DNA of 64,000 nucleotides from Takakia lepidozioides (GCA_030704615.1 CM060734.1:18600001-18664000); one strand, 5' to 3'; positions 3,510-61,200 are shown, counted from the stretch's first letter. Numbers and translations are program-made. Notes: generated from the letters alone by a model not told the origin.

Positions 3510-3566
3510 TCTTTTCAATACCCGGACCCGGCTGGTATTAGAAAAAGTAATACCCACCCAACACTG
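3510..3566. mobile_element. Right end of a hAT-family MITE related to 54529-55034
   Basis: CCGGACCCGG...TATTA(G)AAAAA...CCCAACACTG aligns with 54989-55034. The next 8 bp (GTGTGGAG) fit the nTnnnnAn hAT target consensus. No left end is visible. Confidence 0.65.
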
Positions 3567-39689: not shown

Positions 39690-41841
39690 CTAATCAACCT
39701 CCTCAATTGTTGGGCCCGCTCCAGCACCTCCTGAAGGTCCATTTTCAGCACCTCCATAGGAATGAATGTCAGGACCACCTGCACCGCCTTGATACATGCG
39801 AGCAATAATAGGGTTGCAAATTTGTTCGAGCTCTTTCATCTTGTCGTCAAGTTCATCAGCCTCAGCCAGTTGGTTGTGATCAAGCCATTGAACAGCCTGA
39901 TCTACAGCATCTTCTATCTTCTTCCTGTCAGCAGGGTCAAGTTTGGCTGCGATCTTATCGTCCTTGATGGAGTTGCGCATGTTGTAGGCATAGTTTTCCA
40001 GAGCATTTTTAGACTCGATCTTCTTCTTGTGCTCCTCATCTTCTGTCTTGTATTTCTCAGCATCTTGCACCATCTTCTCAATTTCGTCCTTGCTCAACCT
40101 GCCCTTGTCGTTGGTGATGGTAATCTTGTTTTTCTGTCCGGTGGTCTTGTCCTCAGCTGACACATTGAGGATGCCATTGGCGTCAATATCGAAGCACACA
40201 GTGATTTGAGGAACACCTCTGGGCGCAGGGGGGATACCAGACAGCTCGAACTTCCCTAACAAATTGTTGTCTCGCGTCCTAGATCTCTCTCCTTCGTAAA
40301 CTTGGATCAAAACACCAGGTTGATTGTCTGAGTACGTAGAGAAGACCTGCTCCTTCTTGGTGGGGACGGTAGTATTCCTGGGAATCAGAACAGTCATTAC
40401 TCCTCCTGCCGTCTCCAACCCCAACGAGAGAGGGGCCACATCCAACAAAAGCAGGTCCTGCACCTTCTCACTGCCCTCACCACTAAGGATCGCGGCCTGT
40501 ACTGCAGCACCATAGGCAACCGCCTCATCGGGATTGATGATCTTGCATAGCTCCTTCCCGTTGAAAAAATCTTGCAGAAGCTGTTGTACCTTGGGAATGC
40601 GAGTAGAACCCCCAACCAGAACAACATCATGGATACTACCTTTGTCGATCTTGGCATCCCTCAGACACTCCTCCACAGGTTCCATACACTTCCTGAACAT
40701 GTCCATGTTCAGCTCCTCGAATCTGGCCCTGGTTATCGTCGAGTAGAAGTCGATGCCTTCGTACAACGAATCAATCTCTATTGTGGTCTGAGCAGTGGAA
40801 GAAAGCGTCCTCTTCGCTCTCTCACAGGAGGTTCTTAATCTTCTAAGAGCTCTGGCATTTCCAGAAATGTCCTTCTTGTACTTCCTCTTGAACTCCAAAA
40901 CAAAGTGATTCACCATGCGGTTGTCGAAGTCCTCCCCTCCCAAGTGCGTATCTCCAGCAGTCGCCTTGACCTCAAATATACCCTCCTCAATTGTGAGAAT
41001 AGAGACATCAAAAGTACCACCTCCCAGATCAAAGATCAACACGTTCTTCTCCCCAACGCTGGTCGCCTTCTTGTCCAGGCCATAAGCAATGGCGGCAGCC
41101 GTGGGCTCGTTGATTATTCTCATCACATTCAGCCCAGATATGGCCCCGGCATCCTTTGTGGCCTGTCTTTGGGAATCGTTGAAGTAAGCAGGAACTGTCA
41201 CAACGGCGTTCTTCACAGTGGTGCCCAAGAAAGCCTCAGCTATCTCCTTCATTTTAATCAAAACCATAGACGAAATTTCTTCCGCAGCAAACTGCTTATC
41301 CTCTCCCTTGTAGGTAACTGTGATCATTGGCTTTTCAGCTGGTCCAGCGGTCACCTTGAATGGCCAAAGCTTAATATCACTCTGAACAGAAGGGTCTGAA
41401 TACCGCCTTCCTATCAAACGCTTGGCATCTGCAAGAGAGTACAAGATTACTTCAGTACGCACATCACTTTCTGACCAACCAACGCAGATTAAAGGTTCTC
41501 GATGACCACAACAGTTGTTCCTCTACATCGCGAATGATTGAAACAAGAGAAACAATTTAAAAAACAGTAGCAGGAAAATCTGAGAACTCTTGGGAAGAGA
41601 ACCAGAAAACTTCATCGATGCACTTACCGAAAACCGTGTTAGTGGGGTTCATGGCCACTTGATTCTTAGCAGCATCTCCGATGAGACGCTCGGTGTCCGT
41701 AAAAGCGACATAGGATGGTGTAGTTCTGTTCCCCTGATCGTTTGCAATGATCTCCACACGGTCATGTTGCCACACTCCAACGCACGAGTAAGTCGTTCCC
41801 AAATCGATACCGATGGCAGGCCCTTCACTCTTGGCAGCCAT
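39690..41841 (-). CDS. HSP70: Cytosolic HSP70/HSC70, 650 aa; exons 41628-41841 and 39690-41428
   Basis: [34 protein letters not shown] and C-terminal GPTIEEVD. Single intron after nt 214, the canonical position in plant cytosolic HSP70. Confidence 0.98.
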
Positions 41842-42060
41842 ATCCACAAGCACTCACTAGATCAACCTCTCTCAAAACCGAAAACAACCAACAAATCTGT
41901 AACACTCAACTCGGATCCCACAAAATATCGGACTATCTCACAACCGCCCAATCAGGCAATGCACTATACTCACAGACGAGCTCAACAATCGCAGCAATCG
42001 CAGAGACTTGAAGGCAGAATGAAGGAGAGGCAGATCGTAACCACCTTTGAAGTCCTGCGG

Positions 42061-42444: not shown

Positions 42445-43454
42445 TAACCCTGGCCGAAACCGAGTTATGGATGATCTTGGGATGAAGTTTGGATGTATGA
42501 GCTCGTAGATGTGGTCTATACCGGTGTTGGCCGGTTATAAGAATTTTCCATATCCGGCAGTTCAGGTTACTTCAATATTTTTGGGATGGACACACTCCAT
42601 GGTTATGTATAAGGGTTTTTTTTTTTTTTTTAGTATATCCACCGGTTATCTATTTTACAAAATTCTTCAAATTTTGACGGTTATGAATATGACGGTTAGG
42701 GTGTCCTAAAATTGGCGGATATATATGCCATTGGCGGTTATATATAATATATTGAATAGGGTATTTCTCAATTCACACATGACATCCCTAGGGGCTCCGG
42801 GTGCAGCAGTTGTGTGTGCATGACGTCCTATAACTGCGTCCACCAGCCTCGGGAAAGGCCATGGGTATGTGGCGTCGGAGTCAGCCACATCGGCATCAGA
42901 ACAGGAAGATCTGAACTTTAAAATCATGAAGTCAGACGCACGGAAGGTGGCGGAAACTGTACTCAGGGAGGAAGAGGATACCCATCCCAAGGAGAAGGAG
43001 GTAGCATTTGCAGAGACCGAATCTCCGGCAGTCCGGCCAACCATTTCTCGGCCACTTTTGACATCCAGAACAAAGAGTCCGGCCAATCGACCAGTAGCAC
43101 AAGAAAGGCGACGGTGTGTCATAAATGCGGGACCGCTGGACACCTAGCAACAGAATGCCATATGAAAGACAAATACTTAGCTGCTTCTGCAGGCCAGTCT
43201 ATGTAATTACTCCTACCTACAGTCTGTCCTAGTCGATAGACTTGAAAGTGCTCTCAAGTCCACCGGCTCCTTGGCCTGTCTACCACCCGGATACACCTGC
43301 CCGCGTGACTTGAAGAGAGCCATGGTTATAAGCCTGCCTGCCATGGTCTTCGCCAACACCCTTTTACTAAGTTCCATTGATTTCAATTAGGATTGATAAA
43401 TTTTTGACCAGGGATCAGCGATGCGGTGTCTATTATAACCAATTCATCCACAGC

Positions 43455-43712
43455 TCGAGGTTGGTTTCCCTTCGATTTGTTCGAATTGTCTTCATGCCAT
43501 CTACTACAAGTTTTCTCGGCCCTTCCACAAAAACTTGGACCTGCACAACAGGCATCTTGAATGGAGAAAACCAAAGGGCCTGAAATCATCTCAATGGCAA
43601 CCAGCAGCAAAACTGATTGCTGCCCAAACCCAACTTCCATGAAGTATGTCGGAGTTATGTACGACCCGAAGGGCTTCAACTGTTGCACTCACAAATTCTG
43701 GGGTCACCTTTC
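43455..43712 (-). pseudogene. Captured two-exon fragment of an unidentified host gene (mirror copy at ~53128-53390, +)
   Basis: KVTPEFVSATVEALRVVHNSDILHGSW|GT..~89 nt..AG|VQVFVEGPRKLVVDGMKTIR joins in frame across a canonical intron. Confidence 0.45.
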
Positions 43713-43822
43713 CTGGCCTAAACCATGCAGCATTCTAGTAGGGTGTTAATCTATTACTTTGCTTGTTCAACCAAAGCATGAAAAAAATCTGTCAAAAATT
43801 GCATAGATTGCAGCAGGACCTA

Positions 43823-43894
43823 CATGTTCACACAGTAGTCGTCGTCAATCTTCGCTTTGAAGGCCTTTGCTGACTTTGCTGAAAGCTTTTCATG
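43823..43894 (-). pseudogene. Captured fragment of a transmembrane-9 superfamily (TM9SF/EMP70) exon (mirror copy at ~52946-53017, +)
   Basis: KLSAKSAKAFKAKIDDDYCVNM followed by a GT donor resembles the recalled plant TMN motif AKAFKEKIDDEYRVNM. Confidence 0.7.
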
Positions 43895-44199
43895 GACTGT
43901 ATCGTACACATGCTCGCTCTAGTCATCCCCGGTCTTAGACCCCAAGGCTGCATTGATACCTCCCTGCAGCACTTAACCTTCTCTAATCAACCCCTGTAAA
44001 CAATGCCTCGCTTCAACCTGAACTCAATTGATTGAATGCAGGGACCTCCATATAAGATGCTAATGATCAACCAAACCTATGTCAATAGCATTACCTGTGC
44101 AGCAACTGTGAGTGACCTAGTAGCAAATAGCTTGGTGATACAAGCATTTTTATATCCGGACAATGACAACCCAATGGCTGCTTTCAGCCTTGCCCCTCC
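43895..44199 (-). pseudogene. SDH1: Captured, decayed two-exon fragment of succinate dehydrogenase flavoprotein subunit (exons 44095-44199 and 43895-43963; only the second survives in the right arm, 52877-52945)
   Basis: [35 protein letters not shown]|[22 protein letters not shown] versus SdhA GGAGLRAAIGLS...[25 protein letters not shown]...DDW.WH.YDTV. 131-bp GT-AG intron. Confidence 0.9.
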
Positions 44200-44749
44200 C
44201 AGAATTGGGTATAACGCAAAGTGAGGTTAACCTTTACAGCAACCAGCCATAACCACCAAACACAGTATTATACACCTACTGGAGTAGAAAGATATTGGAG
44301 ACATGTAACAAACAATTGAGCACGGTATGTGCACTAACAAGAGAACTTTGGTTCAAGCCAGATATGAGACCTTCACATCAAAGCTATGGTGGTCGCTGAA
44401 TTCCAAGCGCTCCACATGCAATGCACCTGCCTGCAACCCACACGCATTCATATCAAACCAGCCCAGCTGTGTGAACATAACATAGAGCAAAGGCACCTTT
44501 CCCTAAACATGCAGAGGCACCTTTCACAACTAAGGAAATAGAACAAATTGTTCATAGGACAATCCTTTCAATTTCTCTCTCTTTCCCTCACTGCACATAC
44601 ATAGAATGGGCTCTTTTACAAAAGGAAATACTGCAATCTTCCGACATTTCTTCAAACACATCCAATCAACAAGTGCATGCCAACTAGACAAATGATGCAC
44701 TTCCCAGATCAAACAGAACAATTCGCCCCCAAAAGATCAAATGTTTGAC

Positions 44750-46359
44750 CTTGAAGATGTTGATGAGCCGGGGGATTTTGATTTTCTTAAAGACCGATTC
44801 GCCTTCCTTTTCACCTGATGTGGCAAGAACCACTAGCACCGGCAATACTCGTAAAAGGGCATGCCTTTCAGAGTAGAGTAGAACACGGTCTGACTCAAGT
44901 GACTCCAGGCAGAAAAGTATGAGGACTTGAATAATGTCCTCCACACTGTACAGTTTGAAAGATGGGTTAAGTTTCACCACTGGTTGGAGGGAGATGACAA
45001 ACAAAATCACTGGGTTCATGCCTATCAGTCCATTGTATGTAGATGACATTCCTCTTTCTTTTAACTCATTCCCACAACCGGCTGGAATCCCAATACCCGC
45101 GAAAGCATGTCAAAAGGTATGTACAAGCCATACACATTTGTTGTATTTGCTTCAAGCTAGGGCAAGGGCAGCAGTGTTGCATTCTTTCTAGTATGATATC
45201 AGTGCCACTGTATACATAACTCTCCATACCCTGTAGCTGGACTCTCCTCCCCCGAGCACAAGCACTATGGTGATGTTGGATGGACATATACCCTAGCGCA
45301 CTGAAACGCCACAACAACTCTGGAACCCCAAATGGACTCTGCCCTTTCACTCCCAGGGATGGTCAATTGAGAGTGTTGATATTGGCTTGCTTGGGCATTT
45401 CCACTTCTAAGCTAAGCGTTATTTCATTTCCAACTGGTAAGGAATAAGAAGTAAAAAAAGGATTTCCATTCACTCGAAATATTTCAGCCTGCAGGTTGAG
45501 TAGTATTGTCCATCTCGTGCTCAGGAAGATCTGCAGTGGAAAAATCCAACCAAGTGAACCCACCAACATGCTTCCATGTCAGCATGCATGTAAGAAAAAC
45601 AGAGTTGTCTTAAGATACAGATGAAGTAACAGGCTGCAGAAAAAACTTGTAATCCACATATACTGCCAAGTGTCCAACCTTGCCGCACATAACCCTGTGA
45701 TTAAACACTTCTTCACACCAGATTGATCTTGGGTTCAGATTGTGGAACCAGCAAACCATCAACCTCGGTGTCAATCTTTGCTAATCGACTGTGTTGGAGT
45801 GCCATTACAAAGTTTGCCCAGTCCTATCAGGTGCCTGACAATGACAAAGTGCTTACTCACAAATTCAAGTCTTTAGGAGGCGCTAAATCTGGCTATCATC
45901 ATTTGTGTGCCTCAAGTCTCTTACAACAAGCAGAGTCCAACCTCCTAAAGTGAGAATGTACTCATAAGACGGTGTTTGCCGTAGCCTTGTGGCCATAGAA
46001 CCCCAGCCCAGTTTGGGCAGAAAAAAGGGAGCAGACACTACTTTTGTGAGGGGCTCCCTCCGGAAGTATGACATACCTTGATAAAGACAATTAGTTCAAG
46101 TTTTCCTAGTATCCTCTAGAAAGCCCATCACACAAGCATCAACCTGTTGTCTGTGACCTGCCAGGCGATTAGACCCCAACAGGACCAAGCCTTTAGGCCC
46201 AACCTCAAGATTTTCAAAGTTGGTGAACAGAAGTGAGGGGGAACAATGTTGTCTGGGCTGAAAGAGAGAGGGAGGGAGAGAGAGTACACCTGGAGATCAT
46301 CAAGTTCTTTCCTCATCACATCAGTGTCAGGCCATTGTGCATTGACTTGAGTGAACGTT
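44750..46359 (-). pseudogene. PIR: Captured three-exon fragment of PIROGI/SRA1 (CYFIP; SCAR/WAVE complex), left-arm copy; exons 46290-46359, 45466-45530, 44750-44945
   Basis: RTFTQVNAQWPDTDVMRKELDDLQ|IFLSTRWTILLNLQAEIFRVNG|VEDIIQVLILFCLESLE...ERHALLRVLPVLVVLAT...RLINIFK matches the plant PIR121/SRA1 N-terminal region. Flanking exons are absent. Confidence 0.9.
45950..46250 (-). mobile_element. Old, diverged 3' stub of the RTE-X-like LINE inside the captured PIR intron (mirror copy at ~50920-51215, +)
   Basis: Terminal motif GGCCACAAGGCTACGGCAAACACCGTCTTATGAGTACATTCTC and upstream CACCAACTTTGAAA. Confidence 0.85.
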
Positions 46360-46961
46360 CTGTCACGAAGCCACCACACACATGAGCAGACATATATACT
46401 AGTATGCAGAATCTTTGGTTGTGTAACAACAACATCTAAGCAACAGATTGAAGATTTCAAGCTTGGATTGTATGTGTAGCTGAAACTTTTGCTAATCAAT
46501 ATATATACTACGATCTGTGCACCGCAAAATCTCTATAGCAACAATAAACATAATCCCTGCACCTATGTTCACCAACATTCCTAATTTCCAGGCTGACCCT
46601 AAAGTCCTGGCCCTGCCTAGGTCCATTACAGCCCAATCTAAGCTTTTCTTGAAGTCAACAACTTATGCAACCTCCTTACCTGCAACCCAACCCTATTACT
46701 TATAGGATTCCCTTCCATTAAATTGACAGCCACAACCCACCTGGGGTAGCCAAGACAAAGATGTATCGAGTAGCAATAAACCAACCTCTTGGTTCCGCAA
46801 TGACATAAATAGTCTCATGAGGCAATCAATTGAGAAAGACATAATTACGATGCACTTCAACTATTATAATTCATTGTCATCTCTACATGTTCTAATCTAC
46901 AATTGTCCAATGAAAGAGTAGCCTACAACGTGGCTACTATTACATTGACCATGGATAGACC

Positions 46962-47997
46962 TTAGTGATCTACATCTGTTTGCAATTCCTCAAACAAACC
47001 AGCCTCTTCTAAGATGACATAGTTGTCATCGGCTAGGGTTGCCTCGGCCTCCATGAAGTCCTTAAAATCGCAAGTGGACATACAATTTTGGCGAGGATCA
47101 GCTGACCAATTTTTGATCACCATAACCATTTGATCAAGATTCTCAACTTGCAAACGACATCGTTTGAGTGCTGTCAAAACCCCAGCAATGCTAAAAATTC
47201 TTTCAGTCTCAATTTGAGAACCTGGGATGCCAAGGATTTGTTTTGCTAAAAATCCAACATTTGGAAATTGGTTTTCATGGCTCTCCACCATGCTAGAGGA
47301 TCGGTGCACGCATTGGGCTGAATTGACAAGCGTCGGAACAAGTTCAATTTCCCTTTCACAAGCGCTTTTGAGGACTCCTCATTTGTCGCCTTTGAACCAA
47401 ACATCATGTTGTCTTCAACGACATCAACATGAGCCATCTCTGCCCCAGATGAGCCTTGTGCCATCGATGAAGTTGTTGCAGGGTTTAAGAATGCAAAACA
47501 AACCATTAATAAAGGATCAACAATGTTCACATCATACTGAGAGACTAATGCAATAGTAGAACCTCGACCAGCATACTCAATTACACACCTTAAATTCTTG
47601 AAGCGGGGATCTAACATGATAGCGAGCATATTGTGAGATTGCTTATTATCAAATAGCACAAGAAATCTGAGAAGCGGCTCAAGTACATAAATTACTTGTT
47701 GTCGCATCCTACTATGAAGAATAAGAAGCTCTGCCTCAAACACATCTGGAGGCTCAGTCTCATCCTCAACTCGAACAATCTCAGCTCGCATGTTCACACA
47801 CACAGTCATAGCCGTAGTGAGGGCGTCAGATAGGAGCCAATGTCCACGTGATTGATTCAACACACAAGCTGTTACCACTGGGTTCAGGATAGATGTAATT
47901 GCTTCTGTAATCGCCCAAACTTGAGGTTTTGGAACTCGTTGTTGCAAAGCAAGTGACACTTGCCGACCATAACATATAATGATCGCTTGCTTGAACT
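46962..47997 (-). pseudogene. Inverted copy of the 3' half of the hAT transposase
   Basis: MLDPRFK and LAKQILGIPGSQIETERIFSIAG (hAT C-terminal dimerisation domain); mirror of 49178-50205. Confidence 0.92.
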
Positions 47998-48003
47998 AAT
48001 CAA

Positions 48004-50205
48004 AACGCCTTATCTTTCAAGCTGGTTTTTGGAAACCGCATAATCGGTATAGCGTTTGTTGGGGATTCTTTGCTGTGAATGATAATCTCCCTATGGATGT
48101 TGCAAACCCTCAAATTTTGAGATGCATTGTTTGCAGATCTGACACAGCTTCTAGTAGCGTACTTGATCAGCGAAGTGCACTTAGGAAGGGACTAGTCAAG
48201 TATACCAAGAAGCATGGTATCACCGCTATGCACACACATATTCAAAATGTTCATCCCCATTTGTTGGCTATGAGGAAAAATCAACTCGTGGAGAAGAAAA
48301 GTGACGACACACGTTTGCCATCAAAGAAACAACCCGCACCTACTGGCGCTGCCATCACAGCTTTCTTTGGTTCGAGTAATCCTTACTCAAAACGTGATGA
48401 TGCACAAGTGAAGTTTCTTGAAGACCTCACCTTGTACGTGTGCAAATGTTACAGGCCAATCTCAACGGTAGAAAATATATGGCTCAAGAGGTTAATCTTA
48501 CGTCAGTGTCCTCAAGTCGTGTTTCCCTCTCATCACATGTTTGTCGAGGAAACATTACCTGGCATGGTACATAAGATTATGGACCAGTACGTGTTGCCTT
48601 CTCTTGCGAATGCTAGCACTGTATCTGCAAGTTTTGATTTGTGGATGAGCAGGGGTGGCGTGGATACATTTGCATTGGTTATAAATTTCTTGAGCGACAA
48701 ATGGGTTCCAGTACACTTAATAGTTGGACTGTTTGAGGTTTCAGATACACATGGAACTCCTATGGCAATCCAGCTTAAATCCATGCTTGATAAGTTTGGC
48801 CTCACCAAACGAGTAATTGCCTTTGTGAAGGATGAATGTGGCAATCTGGGAACCATGACAGCAGATCTCGAATCGATTGTCAATGTGAGCCATTGCAGAT
48901 TCAAAAAGTACACGAGGGTACTTGTTTTGGTCACGTTTTGTCCAAAGCAATCCAATATGCTACCGATGACAAAAAGGTATCAGCAAATCTGACAAGTGTC
49001 AGTATTAGTGATGCCCAAGCTACTTTGCAAAAGACCATAACGTGGACAAAAAAATCAGGCAAGGGGCAAAGGGAGTGGAAACAGACATGTATGGATATGC
49101 AGTTGAGGCCTCGCAAACTGAAAACTCCTGTAAAAAACGTTTTGCAAGCAAAGCGGTTATGTTTCAGGAAACTCTTGAGTTCAAGCAAGCGATCATTATA
49201 TGTTATGGTCGGCAAGTGTCACTTGCTTTGCAACAACGAGTTCCAAAACCTCAAGTTTGGGCGATTACAGAAGCAATTACATCTATCCTGAACCCAGTGG
49301 TAATAGCTTGTGTGTTGAATCAATCACGTGGACATTGGCTCCTATCTGACGCCCTCACTACGGCTATGACTGTGTGTGAACATGTGAGCTGAGATTGTTC
49401 GAGTTGAGAATGAGACTGAGCCTCCAGATGTGTTTGAGGCAGAGCTTCTTATTCTTCATAGTAGGTTGCGACAACAAGTAATTTATGTACTTGAGCCGTT
49501 TCTCAGATTTCTTGTGCTATTTGATAACAAGCAATCTCACAATATGCTCGCTATCATGTTAGATCCCCGCTTCAAGAATTTAAGGTGTGTAATTGAGTAT
49601 GCTGGTCGAGGTTCTACTATTGCATTAGTCTCTCAGTATGATGTGAACATTGTTGTTCCTTTATTAATGGTTTGTTTTGCATTCTTAAACCCTGCAACAA
49701 CTTCATCGATGGCACAAGGCTCATCTGGGGCAGAGATGGCTCATGTTGATGTCGATGAAGACAACATGCTGTTTGGTTCAAAGGCGACAAATGAGGAGTC
49801 CTCAAAAGCGCTTGTGAAAGGGAAATTGAACTTGTTCCGACGCTTGTCAATTCAGCCCAATGCGTGCACCGATCCTCTAGCATGGTGGAGAGCCATGAAA
49901 ACCAATTTCCAAATGTTGGATTTTTAGCAAAACAAATCCTTGGCATCCCAGGTTCTCAAATTGAGACTGAAAGAATTTTAGCATTGCTGGGGTTTTGACA
50001 GCACTCAAACGATGTCGTTTGCAAGTTGAGAATCTTGATCAAATGGTTATGGTGATCAAAAATTGGTCAGCTGATCCTCGCCAAAATTGTATGTTGCGAT
50101 TTTAAGGACTTCATGGAGGCCGAGGCAACCCTAGCCGATGACAACTATGTCATCTTAGAAGAGGCTGGTTTGTTTGAGGAATTGCAAACAGATGTAGATC
50201 ACTAA
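48004..50205 (+). pseudogene. hAT transposase (BED finger, DDE core, dimerisation domain), 5'-truncated and frameshifted
   Basis: FWKPH...CWGFF...CIVC...HTHIQNVH (BED), SFDLW, VKDECGN, CFGH, LDPRFK and SQIETERI. Several frameshifts; stop at 50203-50205. Confidence 0.92.
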
Positions 50206-50807
50206 GGTCTATCCATGGTCAATGTAATAGTAGCCACGTTGTAGGCTACTCTTTCATTGGACAATTGTAGATTAGAACATGTAGAGATGACAATGAATTA
50301 TAATAGTTGAAGTGCATCGTAATTATGTCTTTCTCAATTGATTGCCTCATGAGACTATTTATGTCATTGCGGAACCAAGAGGTTGGTTTATTGCTGCTCG
50401 ATACATCTTTGTCTTGGCTACCCCAGGTGGGTTGTGGCTGTCAATTTAATGGAAGGGAATCCTATAAGTAATAGGGTTGGGTTGCAGGTAAGGAGGTTGC
50501 ATAAGTTGTTGACTTCAAGAAAAGCTTAGATTGGGCTGTAATGGACCTGGGCAGGGCCAGGACTTTAGGGTCAGCCTGGAAATTAGGAATGTTGGTGAAC
50601 ATAGGTGCAGGGATTATGTTTATTGTTGCTATAGAGATTTTGCGGTGCACAGATCGTAGTATATATATTGATTAGCAAAAGTTTCAGCTACACATACAAT
50701 CCAAGCTTGAAATCTTCAATCTGTTGCTTAGATGTTGTTGTTACACAACCAAAGATTCTGCATACTAGTATATATGTCTGCTCATGTGTGTGGTGGCTTC
50801 GTGACAG

Positions 50808-52416
50808 AACGTTCACTCAAGTCAATGCACAATGGCCTGACACTGATGTGATGAGGAAAGAACTTGATGATCTCCAGGTGTACTCTCTCTCCCTCCCTCT
50901 CTCTTTCAGCCCAGACAACATTGTTCCCCCTCACTTCTGTTCACCAACTTTGAAAATCTTGAGGTTGGGCCTAAAGGCTTGGTCCTGTTGGGGTCTAATC
51001 GCCTGGCAGGTCACAGACAACAGGTTGATGCTTGTGTGATGGGCTTTCTAGAGGATACCAGGAAAACTTGAACTAATTGTCTTTATCAAGGTATGTCATA
51101 CTTCCGGAGGGAGCCCCTCACAAAAGTAGTGTCTGCTCCCTTTTTTCTGCCCAAACTGGGCTGGGGTTCTATGGCCACAAGGCTACGGCAAACACCGTCT
51201 TATGAGTACATTCTCACTTTAGGAGGTTGGACTCTGCTTGTTGTAAGAGACTTGAGGCACACAAATGATGATAGCCAGATTTAGCGCCTCCTAAAGACTT
51301 GAATTTGTGAGTAAGCACTTTGTCATTGTCAGGCACCTGATAGGACTGGGCAAACTTTGTAATGGCACTCCAACACAGTCGATTAGCAAAGATTGACACC
51401 GAGGTTGATGGTTTGCTGGTTCCACAATCTGAACCCAAGATCAATCTGGTGTGAAGAAGTGTTTAATCACAGGGTTATGTGCGGCAAGGTTGGACACTTG
51501 GCAGTATATGTGGATTACAAGTTTTTTCTGCAGCCTGTTACTTCATCTGTATCTTAAGACAACTCTGTTTTTCTTACATGCATGCTGACATGGAAGCATG
51601 TTGGTGGGTTCACTTGGTTGGATTTTTCCACTGCAGATCTTCCTGAGCACGAGATGGACAATACTACTCAACCTGCAGGCTGAAATATTTCGAGTGAATG
51701 GAAATCCTTTTTTTACTTCTTATTCCTTACCAGTTGGAAATGAAATAACGCTTAGCTTAGAAGTGGAAATGCCCAAGCAAGCCAATATCAACACTCTCAA
51801 TTGACCATCCCTGGGAGTGAAAGGGCAGAGTCCATTTGGGGTTCCAGAGTTGTTGTGGCGTTTCAGTGCGCTAGGGTATATGTCCATCCAACATCACCAT
51901 AGTGCTTGTGCTCGGGGAGGAGAGTCCAGCTACAGGGTATGGAGAGTTATGTATACAGTGGCACTGATATCATACTAGAAAGAATGCAACACTGCTGCCC
52001 TTGCCCCTAGCTTGAAGCAAATACAACAAATGTGTATGGCTTGTACATACCTTTGACATGCTTTCGCGGGTATTGGGATTCCAGCCGGTTGTGGGAATGA
52101 GTTAAAAGAAAGAGGAATGTCATCTACATACAATGGACTGATAGGCATGAACCCAGTGATTTTGTTTGTCATCTCCCTCCAACCAGTGGTGAAACTTAAC
52201 CCATCTTTCAAACTGTACAGTGTGGAGGACATTATTCAAGTCCTCATACTTTTCTGCCTGGAGTCACTTGAGTCAGACCGTGTTCTACTCTACTCTGAAA
52301 GGCATGCCCTTTTACGAGTATTGCCGGTGCTAGTGGTTCTTGCCACATCAGGTGAAAAGGAAGGCGAATCGGTCTTTAAGAAAATCAAAATCCCCCGGCT
52401 CATCAACATCTTCAAG
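50808..52416 (+). pseudogene. PIR: Captured three-exon PIR/SRA1 fragment, right-arm copy; exons 50808-50877, 51637-51701, 52221-52416
   Basis: Translation identical to the left-arm copy. Confidence 0.9.
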
Positions 52417-54528
52417 GTCAAACATTTGATCTTTTGGGGGCGAATTGTTCTGTTTGATCTGGGAAGTGCATCATTTGTCTAGTTGGCATGCACTTGTTGA
52501 TTGGATGTGTTTGAAGAAATGTCGGAAGATTGCAGTATTTCCTTTTGTAAAAGAGCCCATTCTATGTATGTGCAGTGAGGGAAAGAGAGAGAAATTGAAA
52601 GGATTGTCCTATGAACAATTTGTTCTATTTCCTTAGTTGTGAAAGGTGCCTCTGCATGTTTAGGGAAAGGTGCCTTTGCTCGATGTTATGTTCACACAGC
52701 TGGGCTGGTTTGATATGAATGCGTGTGGGTTGCAGGCAGGTGCGTTGCATGTGGAGCGCTTGGAATTCAGCGATCATTACCATCTTATATGGAGGTCCTT
52801 GCATTCAATCAGTTGAGTTCAGGTTGAAGCGAGGCATTGTTTACAGGGGTTGATTAGAGAAGGTTAAGTGTTGCAGGGAGGTATCAATGCAGCCTTGGGG
52901 TTTAAGACAGGGGATGACTAGAGCGAGCATGTGTACGATATAGTCCATGAAAAGCTTTCAGCAAAGTCAGCAAAGGCCTTCAAAGCGAAGATTGACAACG
53001 ACTAATGTGTGAACATGTAGGTCCTGCTGCAATCTATGCAATTTTTGACAGATTTTTTTCATGCTTTGGTTGAACAAGCAAAGTAATAGATTAACACCCT
53101 ACTAGAATGCTGCATGGTTTTGTCCAGGAAAGGTGACCCCAGAAGTTGTGAGTGCAACAGTTGAATCCCTTCGGGTCGTACATAACTCCGACATACTTCA
53201 TGGAAGTTGGGTTTGGGCAGTAATCAGTTTTGCTGCTGGTTGCCATTGAGATGATTTCAGGCCCTTTGGTTTTCTCCATTCAAGATGCCTGTTGTGCAGG
53301 TCCAAGTTTTTGTGGAAGGGCCGAGAAAACTTGTAGTAGATGGCATGAAGACAATTCGAACAAATCGAAGGGAAACCAACCTCGAGCTGTGGATGAATTG
53401 GTTATAATAGAACACCGCATCGCTGATCCTTGGTCAAAATTTATCAATCCTAATTGAAATCAATGGAACTTAGTAAAAGGGTGTTGGCGAAGACCATGGC
53501 AGGCAGGCTTATAACCCTGGCTCTCTTCAAGTCACGCGGGCAGGTGTATCCGGGTGGTAGACAAGCCAAGGAGCTGGTGGACTTGAGAGCACTTTCAAGT
53601 CTATCGACTAGGACAGACTGTAGGTAGGAGTAATTACATAGACTGGCTTGCAGAAGCAGCTAAGTATTTGTCTTTCATATGGCATTCTGTTGCTCGGTGT
53701 CCAACGGTCCCGCATTTATGACACCATGTTGCGTTTCTTGTGCTACTGGTCGATTGGCCGGACTCTTTGTTCTGGATGTCAAAAGTGGCCAAGAAATGGT
53801 TGGCTGGACTGCCGGAGATTCGGTCTCTGCAAATGCTACCTCCTTCTCCTTGGGATGGGTATCCTCTTCCTCCCTAAGTACAGTTTCCGCCACCTTTCGT
53901 GCGTCTGACTTCATGACTTTAAAGTTCAGATCTTCCTGTTCTAATGCCGATGTGGCTGACTCCGACGCCACATACCCAGGGCCTTTCCCGAGGCTGGTGG
54001 ACGCAGTTATAGGATGTCATGCACACACAACTGCTGCACCCGGAGCCCTAGGGATGTCATGTGTGAATTGAGAAATACCCTATTCAATATATTATATGTA
54101 ACCGCCAATGGCATATATATCCGCCAATTTTAGGACACCCTAATCGTCATATTCATAACCGTCAAAATTTGAAGAATTTTGTAAAATAGATAACCGGTGG
54201 ATACTAAAATAAAAAAATTACCCTTATACATAACCATGGAGTGTGTCCATCCCAAAAATATTGAAGTAACCTTAACCGCCGGATATGTAAAATTCTTATA
54301 ACCGGCCAACACTGGTCAAAACGCCTTACTAATCCGGGTATACAGTGTAGTGCTAACCTTGATATATGGTACATATACATATACATACTCACCTCCCAAC
54401 CATCGGTTATCTATTTGCTCTATTTTGCAGAAATACCCTCTATGCGGTTATGTATACCTACTAACCGGGGTGGTAACCGACTCACTAACCAGGGTAGAGT
54501 GCTATACCCGGCCAACCCTGGTCTATAC

Positions 54529-55034
54529 CAGTGTTGGGCGGATATAGAGTCATCAGGATATCAATAATAGGATACCAACCCGGATATCAATGTATCTGGA
54601 TCCGGATCCGGCAACTATTTGATATCCGGCGGATACATAAAACCCGGAGCTCAACCGGATACAAGAAAATCAAATAAAATATTAATATTTTATTAGAATT
54701 TTAATAATTTAAATTGATTAAATGAAATTTAAAAACAATTGCGAGTAAATCTCAATAAAGTTAAATCAGGGCTACAATCCCCCCTGTTTAACAAAAAGTT
54801 ATATTTCATGATTATTTATATCCGGATTACTCTATAACCGCCGGATATTAAAATCTAAATATCCGGACTTATTTATATCGGGCAGATTTTTAAGAACTTA
54901 CACTATGCATAACTGGCGGTTATTAGAAATGCAAATTATTCTAATATCCGGATCCGCAGGATATATCATTCACTAATTTGTCAAGTATCCGGACCCGGCG
55001 GATATTAAAAAAAACTAAGAATCGCCCAACACTG
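54529..55034. mobile_element. 506-bp hAT MITE
   Basis: TIRs CAGTGTTGGGCG / CGCCCAACACTG. TSD GTCTATAC at 54521-54528 and 55035-55042. Many subterminal CGGATA/TATCCG motifs and an AT-rich core. Confidence 0.95.
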
Positions 55035-55068
55035 GTCTATACGTCCAAGGGGATGAGACAAACGGATG

Positions 55069-55222: not shown

Positions 55223-58200
55223 ATGGGGATTTTTGAGCCATTTAGGGCAGTGGGATATATTACAGATGGAACTCCTTTCGCCGTCCAACGCAGAGGCATG
55301 GAGAATTTTGTTACAGTCAGTGTCGGGAAAGCTTGGCAAATTTACAATGTAAATCTCTTCTATCGTTTTCGGATTTCTAGATCTTTTTCAGCTGAGTGTG
55401 TTCTGAAATATGTTGCGTTTTGTACTAATGGCATGTGTTTTCTCTCTGTCGCGGGCTTGTGCAGTGTGCGAAGCTTACACTCGTATTCGTAGGTAAGAAT
55501 CTATCAAATAATGATCTAGCTTATTATTGTGTTGAGCTTATCTTTTACAATACGGAGCTCCTTCCTTCCTCTGTTACTAGGTGTCTTGAACGCACTCGCA
55601 TTTGATGGACAGATTTTTTCTGAGAAGGAGAGGGACTTGTGTGTCCGTGAATGCAATTTTGCCTAGAGCTAGCACTGGGTATGGTAGGCTTGGGGGACTG
55701 TAGATGCAAGACACAAATGAAGCTCTTGCCGAAATGACGCAGGGCCACAATTGCAGAAAAGGATTCGAGCGTTAGCTTCACATCGGGATTTCACTTATGC
55801 TGCGACGGGACGCCACATTGCTGTCTTCAAGCGTGCCCACCAGGTTAGTGTATGGGCACGCCCTTCCCTCCTTTATCCCTGTACAATACGAATCTATCTC
55901 TGGTCCCATGTCCGATCCCCATCTTCTGGCATCTAAGGGCAATCTTTGGCGTGCAGAGGGGAATATCTTGTCAAGTCATTGGACGAACTTGGTTTGGACA
56001 TTGCAAAACCAGTTGGCTGGACTCTTAGGTGGTCACATTCCCATAGAGACACAATTTTTGCCTGGCTTTGCTTCCCTCTTATAAAAACAGTTCAATTGTT
56101 GTAATAAGGAGGAATCTATGGCAACTTATCGGAGTGGGTTCTTCCAAGCCCAAGCTAAAGAAGGTATGGTATTCTTTCAGGGGCAAGTCTTCTTATACTG
56201 TGCGGTAAGGAGCTTCTAGCCACCAATTTTGTTGGCCTGTGCAATGTCAAATGCTAGTAAATGGGTAATTTGCTCTTTGCATTGGGATGTTGATTCTCAC
56301 ACGGTTGTGCAGGTAGCTACTTGGAGTGCACACAGCGGCAAAGTGACACTGCTTCTACCATTCGGGCAGCACATTTTGAGTGTTGGTGCTGACGGGCGTC
56401 TGCTCATATGGGTGGCTGTGGACACTGCGTCAGATGTGCCTGCGGAGCCAGTGGGAGAATTGAAGTTTCGGGACACCTTCACACCCACCTGCATCATGCA
56501 CCCTGATACTTACCTTAACAAAGTAATGTAATAGCTTTCCTCTTTGTCTGTCTGTTGTTGTTTGGATTTGTATGTGCCAATGCAAAGACAGTGCCACAGG
56601 CTAGTTTTGTGTGTTCATAGCCTCCTACCCTTTCGTCTCTCTTCTTCCCTCCATTACACTCGCTTTCTCTGAGCTCACAAATCCATACAGTTTTCAGACA
56701 TTGATGCAGGTGGTTGAAGGTTGCTTGGGGTGGCAGGTTTTAATTGGCAGTGAGGAGGGTTCCTTACAACTCTGGAACATCAGTACCCGCCAAATAGTAT
56801 ATGAATTTAAGGGCTGGTGTTCTCCTGTTCATTGCTGCGGATCTTCTCCAGCCCTTGATACTGTCGGAATTGGATGCAGCGACGGAAGAATCCATATTCA
56901 CAACCTCCGCTATGATGAGACAGTAGTGACTTTCTCTCACACAATCAGAGGGGCAATCACAGCTCTCTCCTTCCGGACAGGTACTATCAAACATTCCTGC
57001 AAATTACATGTGGGAGTGCCATCTTTGAAATTTATGAATCAGTATTAACCACCTTGTTTGATGTGGCATATCCAGATTGCACAAGCTAACCATCCATTGT
57101 GATGGTGATAAGTTCACCATCATGTGTGTCCTTCACTAGTCCATTGTGCTGATGGTAATTCATGTTGGCATCGGTTGCCTTTATCTATGAATGTTGAACA
57201 TCGTGTGAAATAGTTAGATATTATTGCGGAAATAGTTGATATTAATTAAGCCATTGCTTGGTTTTATGCAGATGTTTGTATATTAGGTGGGTGTTGCAGT
57301 AGGATTTCCTGCAATGGTCCTTCTCTCTCTCTTCTTTGTCCCATGAGCTGTATAAAGTCTTCTCTTTCTTTCTCTCTCCCTCCATTAAAGAAAGGTAGTG
57401 TCTGCTCCCTCTTGTTGGACCCAAAGTGGGCATGGGGTCTATGGTCACAAGACTACAGCAAATATCTTATGTGTACTCTCTCTCCATCTTGAGCAGCACT
57501 TAGGCATTCTTTGCTGGTGCTTTTATTTGTATTTTCAGTTCTTGTCTCCGGACATCCTGTATGCCATCTCTTCCATGTATGAGATTGTCATTGGCATGGT
57601 CAAGCGGGGGAATTCTCAGCAGAGGTGCATAGCAACATTGGGGTCAGGCTGCCCCTCTCACCTACCCTTTTCAGGATCTACATTGACACTTTGGAGTACA
57701 TCTCAAAAAACCATGGAGTTGGGGTGCCGTTGGATGGGGGACCACGCAATCAGATCTCCTCTACGCTGATGATGTTGCCCTCTTGGCACAATCTCCTGTC
57801 TTCCTGCAACGCCATGTTCACATCCTGGAAAAGTTCTCCAAAGACTATGGGCTGCAAGTCAATCTTAGCAAAATGAAGATCATGGTTTTTCAAGGGCCAG
57901 CGGACTGCAGATTCATCTTCAACCAAAAGGAAATTGAGATTGTCAAATCATACCGATATCTGGGTCTGGTTATCCACTCCCCCAAATTCCAGTTTGCATC
58001 AACTGCCCTGGACAGATTGACGAAGGGCAAGGCGGCCTCCATCCGCCTTCAGGCCCAATGCAAACAGATGCATCTGCGCCACCCCCAACCAAAAAGTGGC
58101 TATTGTTGTGAGTTCTGGGCACCTGGTGTCCCAGTTTCCTGGTGGGAAAAGAATCTGGAAAACCATTGCAGTCATCTTTCTTCCAAGCAATGCTTGGCGC

Positions 58201-61200
58201 CAGAGGCCAGAAACTCCATCTCACATCCTATGTGCAGAGTTTGCAATGCGTGCCACTTCAAAAGCCGAGGCCCTCTTCCGGCTTACAATCTTTCTTAATA
58301 GGTTACAAGCCCTCCCACCCAAGGGGCTCATGGCAAGAGCCCTATTAGGCTCAAAACAGCAGGTTCAAGCACTCCTGGTGATGCTCGAGTGTGAAGTTTT
58401 TTTGAGCGCAATGGACTCTCTATTGCTTCACTCTTGCCAGAGAATCCAGAAGGGGTGGAAATCACATCCAAACAGGATCGCAGACTCATTAGAAGGGAGC
58501 TTATGGAACTACATGTCAGGAGAACTTGGAAGCTACCCAATCTCGCAACACAAAGCTCCATTTCTCTCTAGAGACATTCTTGGTTCTCCGAGATGATAGA
58601 ATCTTGCGGCCCAATTACCTTTCGGCGCCTTTATCCCCTTCCCTCCTGAGGGCATTGGCGGCGTTCAGGGTGGGCTCCCACAATCTACGGATAGAACTGG
58701 CAGATGGGAAAACCTGCAACGGCATGACCACCTATGCCCAGCTTGCCACCGGCGCAACCAGGAAATTGAAACTGAAGAACACTTCTTCTTTTATTGCCCT
58801 CTATATTACGAGATCCGTGGGAGATTCCACTGTCTCTTCCGCGGAACTCACTCTCTCACTGAAGTCTGTCCACTATGAGGATCAGAAATGCTTGGCAGCT
58901 TACCTGCACGAGGCCTTGACCCTTAGACAATCCCTCGAGCAGTAGTTGCTTTTGGGCTGTTTTTTTCCGGCTCTGGTTTTGTTTCCTCTCTCATGTTTTT
59001 TTTCCATTTTTTCCTATAAGCTCTGTTGGGGTTCCGTGGATGTTATAAAGTACAATTTCATCTCATTTCTTTCTCTGTTTCTCTGTTTACCAACTTTGAA
59101 AGTCTCGAGGCTGAGCCAAAAGCCCAGGCCCTTCTGAGGCCTAGTTTTTGGGCAAATCACACACAGCAGATTGATGCTTGTGTGAAGGGATTTCTAGAGG
59201 ATATCTGAAACCCGAATCAAATTCTATGTATAAAGGTAAGTCTTACTACCAATGTCAGCCCCCTGACAGAGGTAGGTTTCTGTCCCTTTGGTTTCTGCTC
59301 AAACTGGGCGCGGGGTCAATGGCCACAAGGCTACGGCAAACAACGTCTTATGAGTACGTTCTCTGTTTCGCATGAAACATAATTTTGTACATCTCTCATT
59401 CAGTACATCCGTCTCTTCTCTCTTCATAACTGACTCCCCACAAACATTCATGCCTCTTTTCACAGATGGACAGCCTTTCTTGGCAGCTGGAGGGGTGTCT
59501 GGTGTGATCAGCATTTGGAATCTGGAAAAACGGAAAGTGCAGGCAGTTATAAAGGATGCCCATGATTCAGTTGTCTCCTCTCTTCACTTCTTGGCCAATG
59601 AGCCTGTCTTGCTCAGTGCTGCCACTGACAATTCCATAAAGGTTTTTTTCGAGTTCTTTCCTTCCCATCTAAGTTCAATGGCAGTTACTCAACTAGTTTG
59701 AAGTGTGCCCACCCTCCATCTCCTTTTCTCTGGTCAGAATCATCTTTCATGTTTCCTCTTTGTTTGCTACTGAGTCAAGTAATATACAAGATCGGTGAGA
59801 GGTACATGAAGAGTTAATCTCACAGGAAACTTGCTTCTGTAGCCGCTTGGCAGGATTGTGATCAATTGGGGGACTTGTGATCAATTACTACATGAAATAT
59901 TCATGCCTTGAGTGCTGCATTGGGTGCGGGGGGTCAGATGTGGATTTTTGACACTAGTGATGGTGAGGCCCGACTGCTGCGATTTCGAAGCGGCCACAGT
60001 GCACCTCCTACCTGTATAAGGTGCACGCATTGGTTTCTCTACTCCAAGACTACATTGCAGTAAAAAGAACATCGTTATACCAGGTAGTATGTTGCTTGAA
60101 CAGTCAGCCTTAAACATGGGGGTTCTGAATGACTCCTCCCCCATTTCGATAAACAATGTGTTTTGTGATGTCAAGAGATAACCCTGTTATCTGGAGATGT
60201 GCTGCAATGGGCCTATGGCACACAATTGTTGAAAAGTCACATGAATGCTGAGCTTAGTGGGAAGTCTTTTCCTAAAGTCAGAGCTCAACAAAAGTTGTAT
60301 TGTGTATATATTCCCTGGGGTCTTACCCTCATCTAATCTGAAGTATGGTGAGATCAGGTGTCACGGATGTAGGTACTATGGAAATGGGTGGCATATCTTG
60401 TCTGCTGGTCAGGACCGCGCCTTCCGTGTCTTCTCCACAATCCAGGTCTTATGTGCAAGCCTCCTGTTTGACTGCTTGTAACAAAATGAACCAATGCAAT
60501 AATACCAGAGCAGGAGTTTGCAAACTAAGCAAATGCATGCAATTAAAACCTGTTCAAGTGTGGCTAGTTCTAGTTTATCTGCATGGGTCAAGTACTGATC
60601 TTTGTTTGTCTCACTCCACATGTGTAAAGGAAAAATGTTGTTGTGAGATGTTTCTGTAGCCTTGTGGCCATAGACCTCGCACCACGTGTTTAAAGAGTTG
60701 GCAAAGTAGATGGTGTGTGTGGTCACGTTCCTATACTGTCTCAAGCTGAAGGAATGGAATCTTTTCGGAGACTGCACGCTGCTTGCCATAAACTAGTGAG
60801 TATTTTATAGAACATATATGCTGAATTAGTTGGGATTGTATGATTCATGCAGGACCAACAAAGCAGAGAATTATCACAAGGACATATTGTAAAAAGGGCG
60901 AGGAAGATGAAAATTAAGGTCAGCTTCGGTCTAATACATCTTCCTCTCTTTTTACTGCAAGCACACCAGTGCAAAAATTACAACTTGTGGAGTATGTCAA
61001 GTTACAGCAAATGGTCTATTTTGGCCTGAAACGCTTGGACTGCTGTGCACACAAAGCACATTGTAACTGCCCCAAACCAAATGAAACGAGCTCTGTGAAT
61101 TGTTGCAAAGAGAAGCACAACATATAGTCCAGTCGTACCTTATTTCTGTGATTTGTGCCTTGAATGCCTACAATAGATTTCTAATTTCTCAGATCTTGGT

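Follow-up and report, generated by a model that had tools for sequence, protein, structure and literature searches.

A folded, probably composite hAT transposon with captured host exons in Takakia lepidozioides

Is a transposon that has been folded onto itself a working source of silencing RNA, or a dead element that happens to have a suitable shape? The question is raised by a hAT element of ~12 kb in Takakia lepidozioides, which lies within a 64,000-nucleotide stretch of the assembly (GCA_030704615.1 CM060734.1:18600001-18664000; hereafter the window, with positions counted from its first letter). The element consists of two long inverted arms around a short loop, and the arms hold parts of a transposase gene together with exons of the host genes PIR, SDH1 and a TM9SF-like gene. 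An earlier reading made from the sequence alone (the sequence-only reading) had proposed that it silences transposon and host genes in trans. We conclude, with a probability of roughly 0.6, that the locus is a genuine, immobile composite hAT element that was folded by one aberrant transposition or repair event. The fuller proposal, in which a fixed natural composite hAT acts as a hairpin-RNA gene whose small interfering RNAs (siRNAs) quiet the hAT family and tune PIR, SDH1 and the TM9SF gene, is a long shot.

Architecture of the folded element

The element is delimited by two copies of an 8-bp target site duplication (TSD) and by terminal inverted repeats (TIRs), and an inverted duplication makes up ~90% of its length. 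Its 3′-side and 5′-side ends are referred to as the A and B ends, respectively. Short-read contigs were examined over 43800-49700 and came from two DNA runs (X1 and X2), from a second study (X5) and from a probable RNA run (X6). The main parts are as follows.

42522-54520, the whole hAT element, ~12 kb, between the 8-bp TSD copies
42514-42521, left TSD, GTCTATAC
42522-42538, + strand, TIR of the A end, with G as second base where its copy has A (54313)
42522-47997, left arm, 5,476 bp
47997/47998, novel junction between left arm and loop; a double-depth DNA contig terminates exactly at 47997
47998-49177, + strand, loop, 1,180 bp, running on without a break into the right arm
48000-48012, + strand, first copy of the 13-mer TCAAAACGCCTTA, beginning 2 bp past the 47997/47998 junction
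49178-54314, right arm, 5,137 bp, with the remaining transposase, + strand cargo and the inverted A end
54298-54314, − strand, internal inverted copy of the A-end TIR
54315-54520, − strand, B-end fragment, 206 bp, outside the repeat, with its own TIR and subterminal motifs
54316-54328, + strand, second copy of TCAAAACGCCTTA, beginning 1 bp past the tip of the internal TIR
54504-54520, TIR of the B end, 17 bp
54521-54528, right TSD, GTCTATAC, doubling as the left TSD of an adjoining element

The arms were aligned globally (42520-47997 against the reverse complement of 49178-54316), and their lengths were measured from the TIR tips. The alignment reproduced the inverted repeat, arm sizes and loop given in the sequence-only reading and contained 57 substitutions and 12 indels, one of 326 bp and 11 small. 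The description of the element as almost wholly an inverted repeat was correct for the arms and loop and failed for the last 206 bp (54315-54520), which are the other end. Its description as a single TSD-bounded hAT element was upheld: the 8-bp TSD, the TIRs and a hAT dimerisation domain are all present and place it in the hAT superfamily.

Several features of the ends support this layout. The outer TIRs (42522-42538 and 54504-54520) are identical at 14 of 17 positions, and a scan of the 64-kb window with the TIR pattern returned seven matches where 0.32 were expected. The 8-mer GTCTATAC occurs just three times in the window, each time bordering an element. The target pattern of hAT elements is nTnnnnAn, with which GTCTATAC agrees. 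Beyond the internal TIR, the adjacent 8 bp agree with the TSD at six of eight positions. A further match to the TIR pattern, with two mismatches and possibly marking where another family member ends, was noted far away at 3550-3566 (− strand).

The fold itself is a fusion of two fragments that carry the same end. Inverted A-end fragments of 5,476 and 6,317 bp abut at 47997/47998, which is not a TIR junction. The 13-mer TCAAAACGCCTTA, with exactly two occurrences in the window, brackets the loop and right arm (~6,316-6,317 bp) as a direct repeat. Because independent breaks would not share a 13-mer, its presence at both novel junctions indicates that the two arose in one event.

The transposase gene shows which boundary is old and which is new. 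It is distributed as follows.

46962-47959, − strand, C-terminal part in the left arm, in two overlapping frames that include the dimerisation domain
48075-48992, + strand, open reading frame (ORF) for the N-terminal half, in the loop with a remnant of the 5′ leader

Read on the + strand from 48075 through the loop and into the right arm to about 50200, the transposase is full-length and frame-broken. A conserved hAT motif straddles 49177/49178, and a paralogous contig (~93% identical, from short reads) spans 49107-49482. The gene is thus continuous over the boundary between loop and right arm, which must be ancestral, and 47997/47998 is the novel junction. The hAT dimerisation domain (Pfam PF05699) was recognized in the left arm with an E value of 1.7e-7 and in the right arm with 0.0068; the C-terminal part and its domain were therefore found in each arm, in line with the ~1 kb of hAT transposase that had been read in both. 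The right-arm copy contains at least five frame breaks, and right-arm deletions of 2, 1 and 5 bp break frames that are still open in the left arm. The only transposase N-terminus has its upstream region cut off at 47998. The transposase gene is dead. Among named proteins, the one closest to it is a hAT protein of the clubmoss Diphasiastrum complanatum (61% identity), which carries PF05699 and by itself makes a lycophyte or other non-seed land plant the probable host; an exact-product look-up of the 305-aa transposase ORF returned no record.

Divergence between the arms is uneven, and two segments define the pattern.

42522-44066, outer block of the left arm, aligned with 52773-54314, 43 substitutions (2.8%)
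44067-44392, 326-bp segment in the left arm only, deleted in the right arm, dividing the outer from the inner divergence block

The outer block differs at 43 of 1,547 bp (2.8%) and the inner block at 14 of 3,605 bp (0.39%; Fisher p = 1.5e-12), and the switch coincides exactly with the 326-bp indel. In 21 of the 25 transitions of the outer block, a left-arm G/C faces a right-arm A/T, which indicates that the outer blocks had different histories. Simple CpG decay was considered as the cause and ruled out, as transversions alone are ~8 times more frequent in the outer block (18/1547 against 5/3605). Read depth corresponds to ~6 copies of 43800-44190 and ~2 copies of the PIR and transposase region, so other members of the family possess the outer block too. 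The 326-bp deletion truncates a captured exon (the fourth, below), which marks the right arm as the derived state. With substitution rates that are often used for plants (0.7-1.3e-8 per site per year, from which the rate of this species may differ), the inner block would date back roughly 0.15-0.3 million years and the outer block roughly 1-2 million years. The right arm also bears nine of the 12 indels as deletions, and one arm is clearly the more decayed. Decay as unequal as this is not expected of copies made simultaneously and kept at one locus.

Captured exons, other cargo and genomic setting

Captured exons were searched singly and not as a joined, spliced model. They are listed with their copies in the right arm.

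44750-44945, − strand, PIR exon, open frame, identical copy at 52221-52416
45466-45530, − strand, PIR exon, open frame, identical copy at 51637-51701
46290-46361, − strand, PIR exon, open frame, identical copy at 50806-50877
43890-43962, − strand, SDH1 exon with an in-frame stop, copy at 52878-52950, the sole SDH1 exon in both arms
44094-44214, − strand, SDH1 exon encoding the FAD-binding N-terminus, left arm only, inside the 326-bp segment
43823-43894, − strand, TM9SF-like exon, 24 codons, copy at 52946-53017 with an acquired stop
44370-44434, fourth captured exon, from a gene without a name, cut short in the right arm by the 326-bp deletion

Run X6 yielded spliced contigs that join captured exons, which identifies X6 as RNA and the exon/intron structure as real. 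One PIR contig links 46290-46361, 45466-45530 and 44750-44945 and differs from them at four of 333 bases. The identity of the gene comes from matches named cytoplasmic FMR1-interacting protein or Protein PIR; a search of the PIR exon against PDB gave no match. An SDH1 contig links 44094-44214 to 43890-43962 with 10 of 194 bases different. The exon at 44094-44214 matched SDHA chains in PDB (E = 1.5e-8) and, weakly, Pfam FAD_binding_2 (E = 0.27); the captured exons, searched singly, had no other usable match in Pfam. The TM9SF-like exon is represented by an abundant spliced RNA contig (4/72 bases different) and the exon at 44370-44434 by a contig with 2/65 differences. Neither of these two exons had a match in Pfam, PDB or ESM Atlas. 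The segment 43823-43894 resembles the luminal N-terminal part of plant TM9SF proteins.

These results bear on three statements of the sequence-only reading. The captured PIR exons were said to be open-frame and close to the donor, and they are: all three are open and the set is 4/333 bases from the mRNA contig. Host-gene exons were said to lie in both arms, which holds for PIR, for SDH1 at 43890-43962 and for the TM9SF-like exon; the SDH1 exon at 44094-44214 is restricted to the left arm. As for the TM9SF gene, one exon of the transcribed type is present, and the name found no confirmation in Pfam, PDB or ESM Atlas.

The PIR, SDH1 and TM9SF-like exons lie on the minus strand in the left arm, in the same orientation as the left-arm transposase. 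The SDH1 and TM9SF-like exons overlap by 5 bp (43890-43894), and one minus-strand frame runs through both. The capture junction therefore lies within exons at a microhomology, as expected of capture by template switching.

Two further pieces of cargo were recognized.

42922-43203, + strand, piece of a frame with a CCHC zinc knuckle, in the outer block, copy at 53637-53918 with 13 differences
45950-46231, high-copy repeat of ~280 bp within the captured PIR intron, copy at 50936-51217

The first matched Pfam zf-CCHC (E = 0.001, just below the curated cut-off) and zf-CCHC_3 (E = 3e-4). Its strand is opposite to that of the captured genes; candidates for its source are the native hAT element, a captured host fragment and the remnant of a retroelement gag gene. 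The ~280-bp repeat has nine copies or fragments in the window, which are 77-85% alike; those outside the element lie at 5969-6048, 6059-6332, 8969-9251, 14103-14381, 27340-27620, 57391-57476 and 59082-59363. Its summed word depth reaches ~188,000 in the DNA runs, against ~27 for single-copy sequence, and it is abundant in the probable RNA run too. It is a very high-copy element resembling a short interspersed nuclear element or a miniature inverted-repeat transposable element (MITE). A search of the whole window against Rfam at the gathering threshold gave no match. The 101-aa frame at 43386-43688 is not a recognizable exon: its lone match in the full HMMER library, a bacterial Ig-repeat protein matched over nine weak repeats, was rejected as spurious.

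The surroundings of the element contain two host genes and a second transposon.

39690-41853, − strand, HSP70 gene, start codon near 41841, Pfam E 6e-225, reading away from the element
54529-55034, hAT MITE, 506 bp, with TIRs related to those of the large element; the third GTCTATAC follows at 55035-55042
55223-55342, + strand, first exon of a UTP21-like gene, E 6e-4 to yeast Utp21 chains, reading away from the element

The reconstructed empty site is a ~860-bp spacer between the divergent HSP70 and UTP21-like genes. The identical 8-bp target GTCTATAC has been used by two different hAT elements, the 12-kb element and the 506-bp MITE. Heat-driven read-in from the HSP70 promoter was considered and dropped when a scan for heat-shock elements stayed at chance level.

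Origin of the fold and rival readings

A model for the fold is available from maize, where the composite Ac insertions p1-ww-id1 and p1-ww-id4 are explained by alternative transposition, in which re-replication of Ac is aborted and the broken ends fuse as two fractured copies of the same terminus (bioRxiv 10.1101/2020.01.07.897926). By a comparable route, the ancestor in Takakia would have been a ~7-kb hAT element in which captured pieces of PIR, the fourth gene, SDH1 and the TM9SF-like gene came after the transposase, those of PIR, SDH1 and the TM9SF-like gene in its orientation. One aberrant event would then have joined a 6.3-kb copy, inverted, into a second copy, either a sister or a sibling. 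This insert would begin shortly before the transposase start and end precisely at the 3′ TIR, and the insertion point would lie between the recipient's 206-bp 5′ end and its mid-transposase. Same-end fragments of 5.5 and 6.3 kb would thereby come to face each other, with the 1.18-kb loop being just the length by which the longer exceeds the shorter. Read in the direction of the transposase, the structure then consists, in order, of the 206-bp 5′ end, the inverted copy from the 3′ TIR tip back to upstream of the start, and the forward copy from mid-transposase to the 3′ TIR.

The two junctions differ in kind. The exact TIR tip at one of them points to transposase-mediated joining; the other is a break junction. 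The 13-mer may derive from a target duplication, from microhomology or from a short, putative native palindrome in the 5′ subterminal region. A replicative alternative would be a fold-back template switch at this putative 13-bp native palindrome, with a subsequent off-centre deletion. Exact-pattern scans of metagenome contigs for the 47997/47998 junction and for the native continuation at the inner end of the 5′ fragment gave no match. The composite would have moved to its present site afterwards or have formed in place. The 326-bp deletion would have come later. To account for the two divergence blocks, each of these routes requires one event more: conversion between the arms over the inner 3.6 kb, which the 326-bp heterology would have halted, or substitution of the right outer 1.5 kb by sequence from a more decayed paralogue.

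Several observations count against this account. A single event predicts even divergence between the arms, and the observed values (43/1547 against 14/3605, with G/C favoured 21:4 on the left) are uneven and biased, so a second event must be assumed. The maize insertions come with a large flanking duplication, and no duplicate of either flank was found in the 64-kb window. Both arms in maize retain the Ac promoter, whereas the arms here represent the 3′ half. The remaining points concern the reads. Among the contigs listed, none bridges 47997/47998, and the loop at 48315-48374 is covered by variant contigs only. Five positions (44484, 45159, 46771, 47404 and 47517) appear only in the right-arm state, at double depth; assembly errors or polymorphisms may thus account for part of the 14 inner substitutions. 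The DNA runs may also derive from the same sample as the assembly. In the loop, at 48315-48374 and at 48182, variant contigs have 5-9 differences per 60 bp, with no exact contig among those listed, which would be explained by a difference between sample and assembly or by gaps in the set of contigs.

The same structure could be read as a working hairpin-RNA locus, with a transcript that is diced to 21-24-nt siRNAs, silences the hAT family in trans and damps PIR, SDH1 and TM9SF. We regard this as unlikely, despite a structure that is well suited to the task. Judged by its sequence, any transcript crossing the element would fold into ~5.1 kb of near-perfect double-stranded RNA (dsRNA), a substrate for Dicer-like enzymes. 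The arms are long and near-perfect (0.39% divergence over the inner 3.6 kb) and include ~1 kb of transposase with ~93% similarity to a paralogous short-read contig; the PIR exons, being identical between the arms and 4/333 from the mRNA contig, would yield many perfect 21-mers. There are also precedents within the superfamily in the maize Ac composite insertions and in NSt of Antirrhinum. The difficulty lies in expression. Both neighbours are transcribed away from the element, and the end that bears the promoter, the 5′ end, is down to 206 bp, the arms being made from the 3′ half. In X6, a probable RNA run seen as contigs only and hence a weak negative, depth was zero on introns, transposase and loop, and only spliced contigs of the donor type were present. 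No further RNA run contained the stretch.

The presumed targets also appear to be expressed. The PIR, SDH1 and TM9SF-like mRNAs were all assembled in X6, which means for PIR that it was not shut off in that run. SDH1 is an essential gene, and its silencing should be selected against. On our analysis, there is about an even chance that the element is a source of small RNA; it is doubtful that it matters for the hAT family and very unlikely that it matters for PIR, SDH1 or TM9SF.

A stepwise history, in which two family members inserted tail to tail or one within the other and were later trimmed by deletions, draws support from the outer 1.5 kb, where a difference of 2.8% with strong directional bias is as expected from two copies and the reads contain ~6 copies, against ~2 for the inner region. 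NSt of Antirrhinum is, after all, simply two Tam3 copies head to head. Yet the whole structure has just one TSD pair and no second 5′ end, and the 8 bp past the internal TIR match the TSD at 6/8 positions only. Independent deletions would not yield a 13-mer common to both novel junctions, and near-identity of the arms over the inner 3.6 kb is likewise at odds with such a history. We therefore consider it improbable and retain the single aberrant event, followed by later change in the arms, as the preferred account.

That account presupposes a correct assembly, on which the short-read contigs bear. The four DNA runs of one sample contain ~0.73 of the sampled words, and the second study contains a small share. 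In X1 and X2, respectively, depth was 51-66 and 72-97 for contigs shared by the arms, 25 and 40 for the deletion joint, a contig that passes over the 326-bp segment, and 29 and 47 for a donor-gene contig. Arm depth is thus about twice that of the donor-gene contig and of the deletion joint, as expected if the arms are two copies and the deleted form is one. A 225-nt contig at double depth stops at 47997, which is the expected de Bruijn fork into the two loop ends. Contigs of X5 cross 44066/44067 into the left-only segment with no differences. The differences between the arms, the unique loop, the clean TSD and the contig evidence together make a false palindrome unlikely. A palindrome created by chimeric fold-back long reads or by a collapsed and re-expanded repeat could draw on the near-identical inner arms, on some left-arm-specific bases that are missing from the short-read contigs and on the ~0.73 of words in the DNA runs, but it is highly improbable, because fold-back chimeras are perfect, spacerless palindromes and this one has 57 substitutions, one 326-bp and 11 small indels and 1.18 kb of unique loop, with arms at double depth, both the single-copy deletion joint and the second-study junction into the 326-bp segment in the reads, a contig end exactly at the fork, a clean TSD and the 13-mer at both junctions.

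Related inverted transposons and meaning

The sequence-only reading took inverted transposon duplications to be established silencers, and the precedents from maize Ac, Antirrhinum and Mu killer are real. The closest is the pair p1-ww-id1 and p1-ww-id4, composite Ac insertions that give rise to dsRNA, to siRNAs of 21-22 and 24 nt and to heritable silencing of Ac; the dsRNA retains introns, and the inner junctions could not be sequenced (bioRxiv 10.1101/2020.01.07.897926). Like these, the Takakia element is a hAT element that contains two fractured copies of the same terminus, inverted and of unequal length, joined by a fusion that is not at a TIR and bounded by an 8-bp TSD. It differs in size (12 kb, against 6-8 kb in maize) and in its arms, which are 3′ halves with captured host exons; those of the maize composites are 5′ halves with the Ac promoter. 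Also unlike the maize composites, it has 206 bp of its other end separating the internal TIR from the right TSD. They have a flanking inverted duplication, and none was seen here within the 64-kb window. The maize alleles arose in laboratory stock, whereas the Takakia element is older, with an arm divergence of 0.4-2.8%.

In Antirrhinum, NSt and OSt are natural derivatives of Tam3, also a hAT element, that produce a hairpin transcript and small RNAs and suppress transposition; NSt consists of two intact Tam3 copies head to head, its small RNAs come from the 5′ ends with transposase-binding motifs, and production of transposase is not reduced (bioRxiv 10.1101/2024.06.24.600476). The Takakia element is likewise a natural hAT derivative with an inverted or rearranged structure. 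In contrast to the intact copies of NSt, those of the Takakia element are dead and truncated, and it is their 3′ halves that are joined. With the maize insertions and the Antirrhinum derivatives already published, the idea of a natural hAT hairpin silencer is not new.

In Mu killer of maize, part of a DNA transposon is duplicated in inverted orientation, transposase coding sequence and a TIR included, and a hairpin RNA of ~4 kb was proposed as its product (PMC3440606). The resemblance lies in an inverted duplication that includes transposase sequence, here the ~1 kb C-terminal part in both arms. Mu killer belongs to the Mutator superfamily, depends on read-through from a flanking gene and has no captured host exons, whereas the present element is a hAT element and both flanking genes point away from it.

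The sequence-only reading had also called the element a Pack-hAT. Pack-TYPE elements, which include Pack-hAT, are non-autonomous, transposase-free by definition and 300-15,000 bp in size (PMC8903248). The element resembles them in its TIRs and TSD, in its size and in carrying intron-containing fragments of several unrelated host genes. Unlike them, it contains a transposase gene, complete if broken, and ~90% of its length is inverted duplication. The label was therefore apt for the host-gene fragments between the TIRs and not for the transposase gene, which is present though decayed; as the definition excludes transposase, the element is not a Pack element in the strict sense.

The authors of the maize study suggested that aberrant transposition builds silencing inverted duplications and that this may be general for DNA transposons (bioRxiv 10.1101/2020.01.07.897926). 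The locus described here establishes no new principle. It is a well-resolved natural example, in a distant plant, of the anatomy of the maize Ac composites: it is older, it is resolved at the level of sequence, and both of its novel junctions can be read, together with the 13-mer that they have in common. Were the arms to give no small RNAs, it would be merely one more rearranged, dead transposon. Small RNAs that map to the arms, if they exist, would support the generality of the maize Ac model, and the near-identical exons of three to four host genes would then provide a direct test of trans-silencing of donor genes. Should the element prove to be a true hairpin gene, it would extend the maize model of Ac self-silencing across land plants and tie it to the regulation of host genes.

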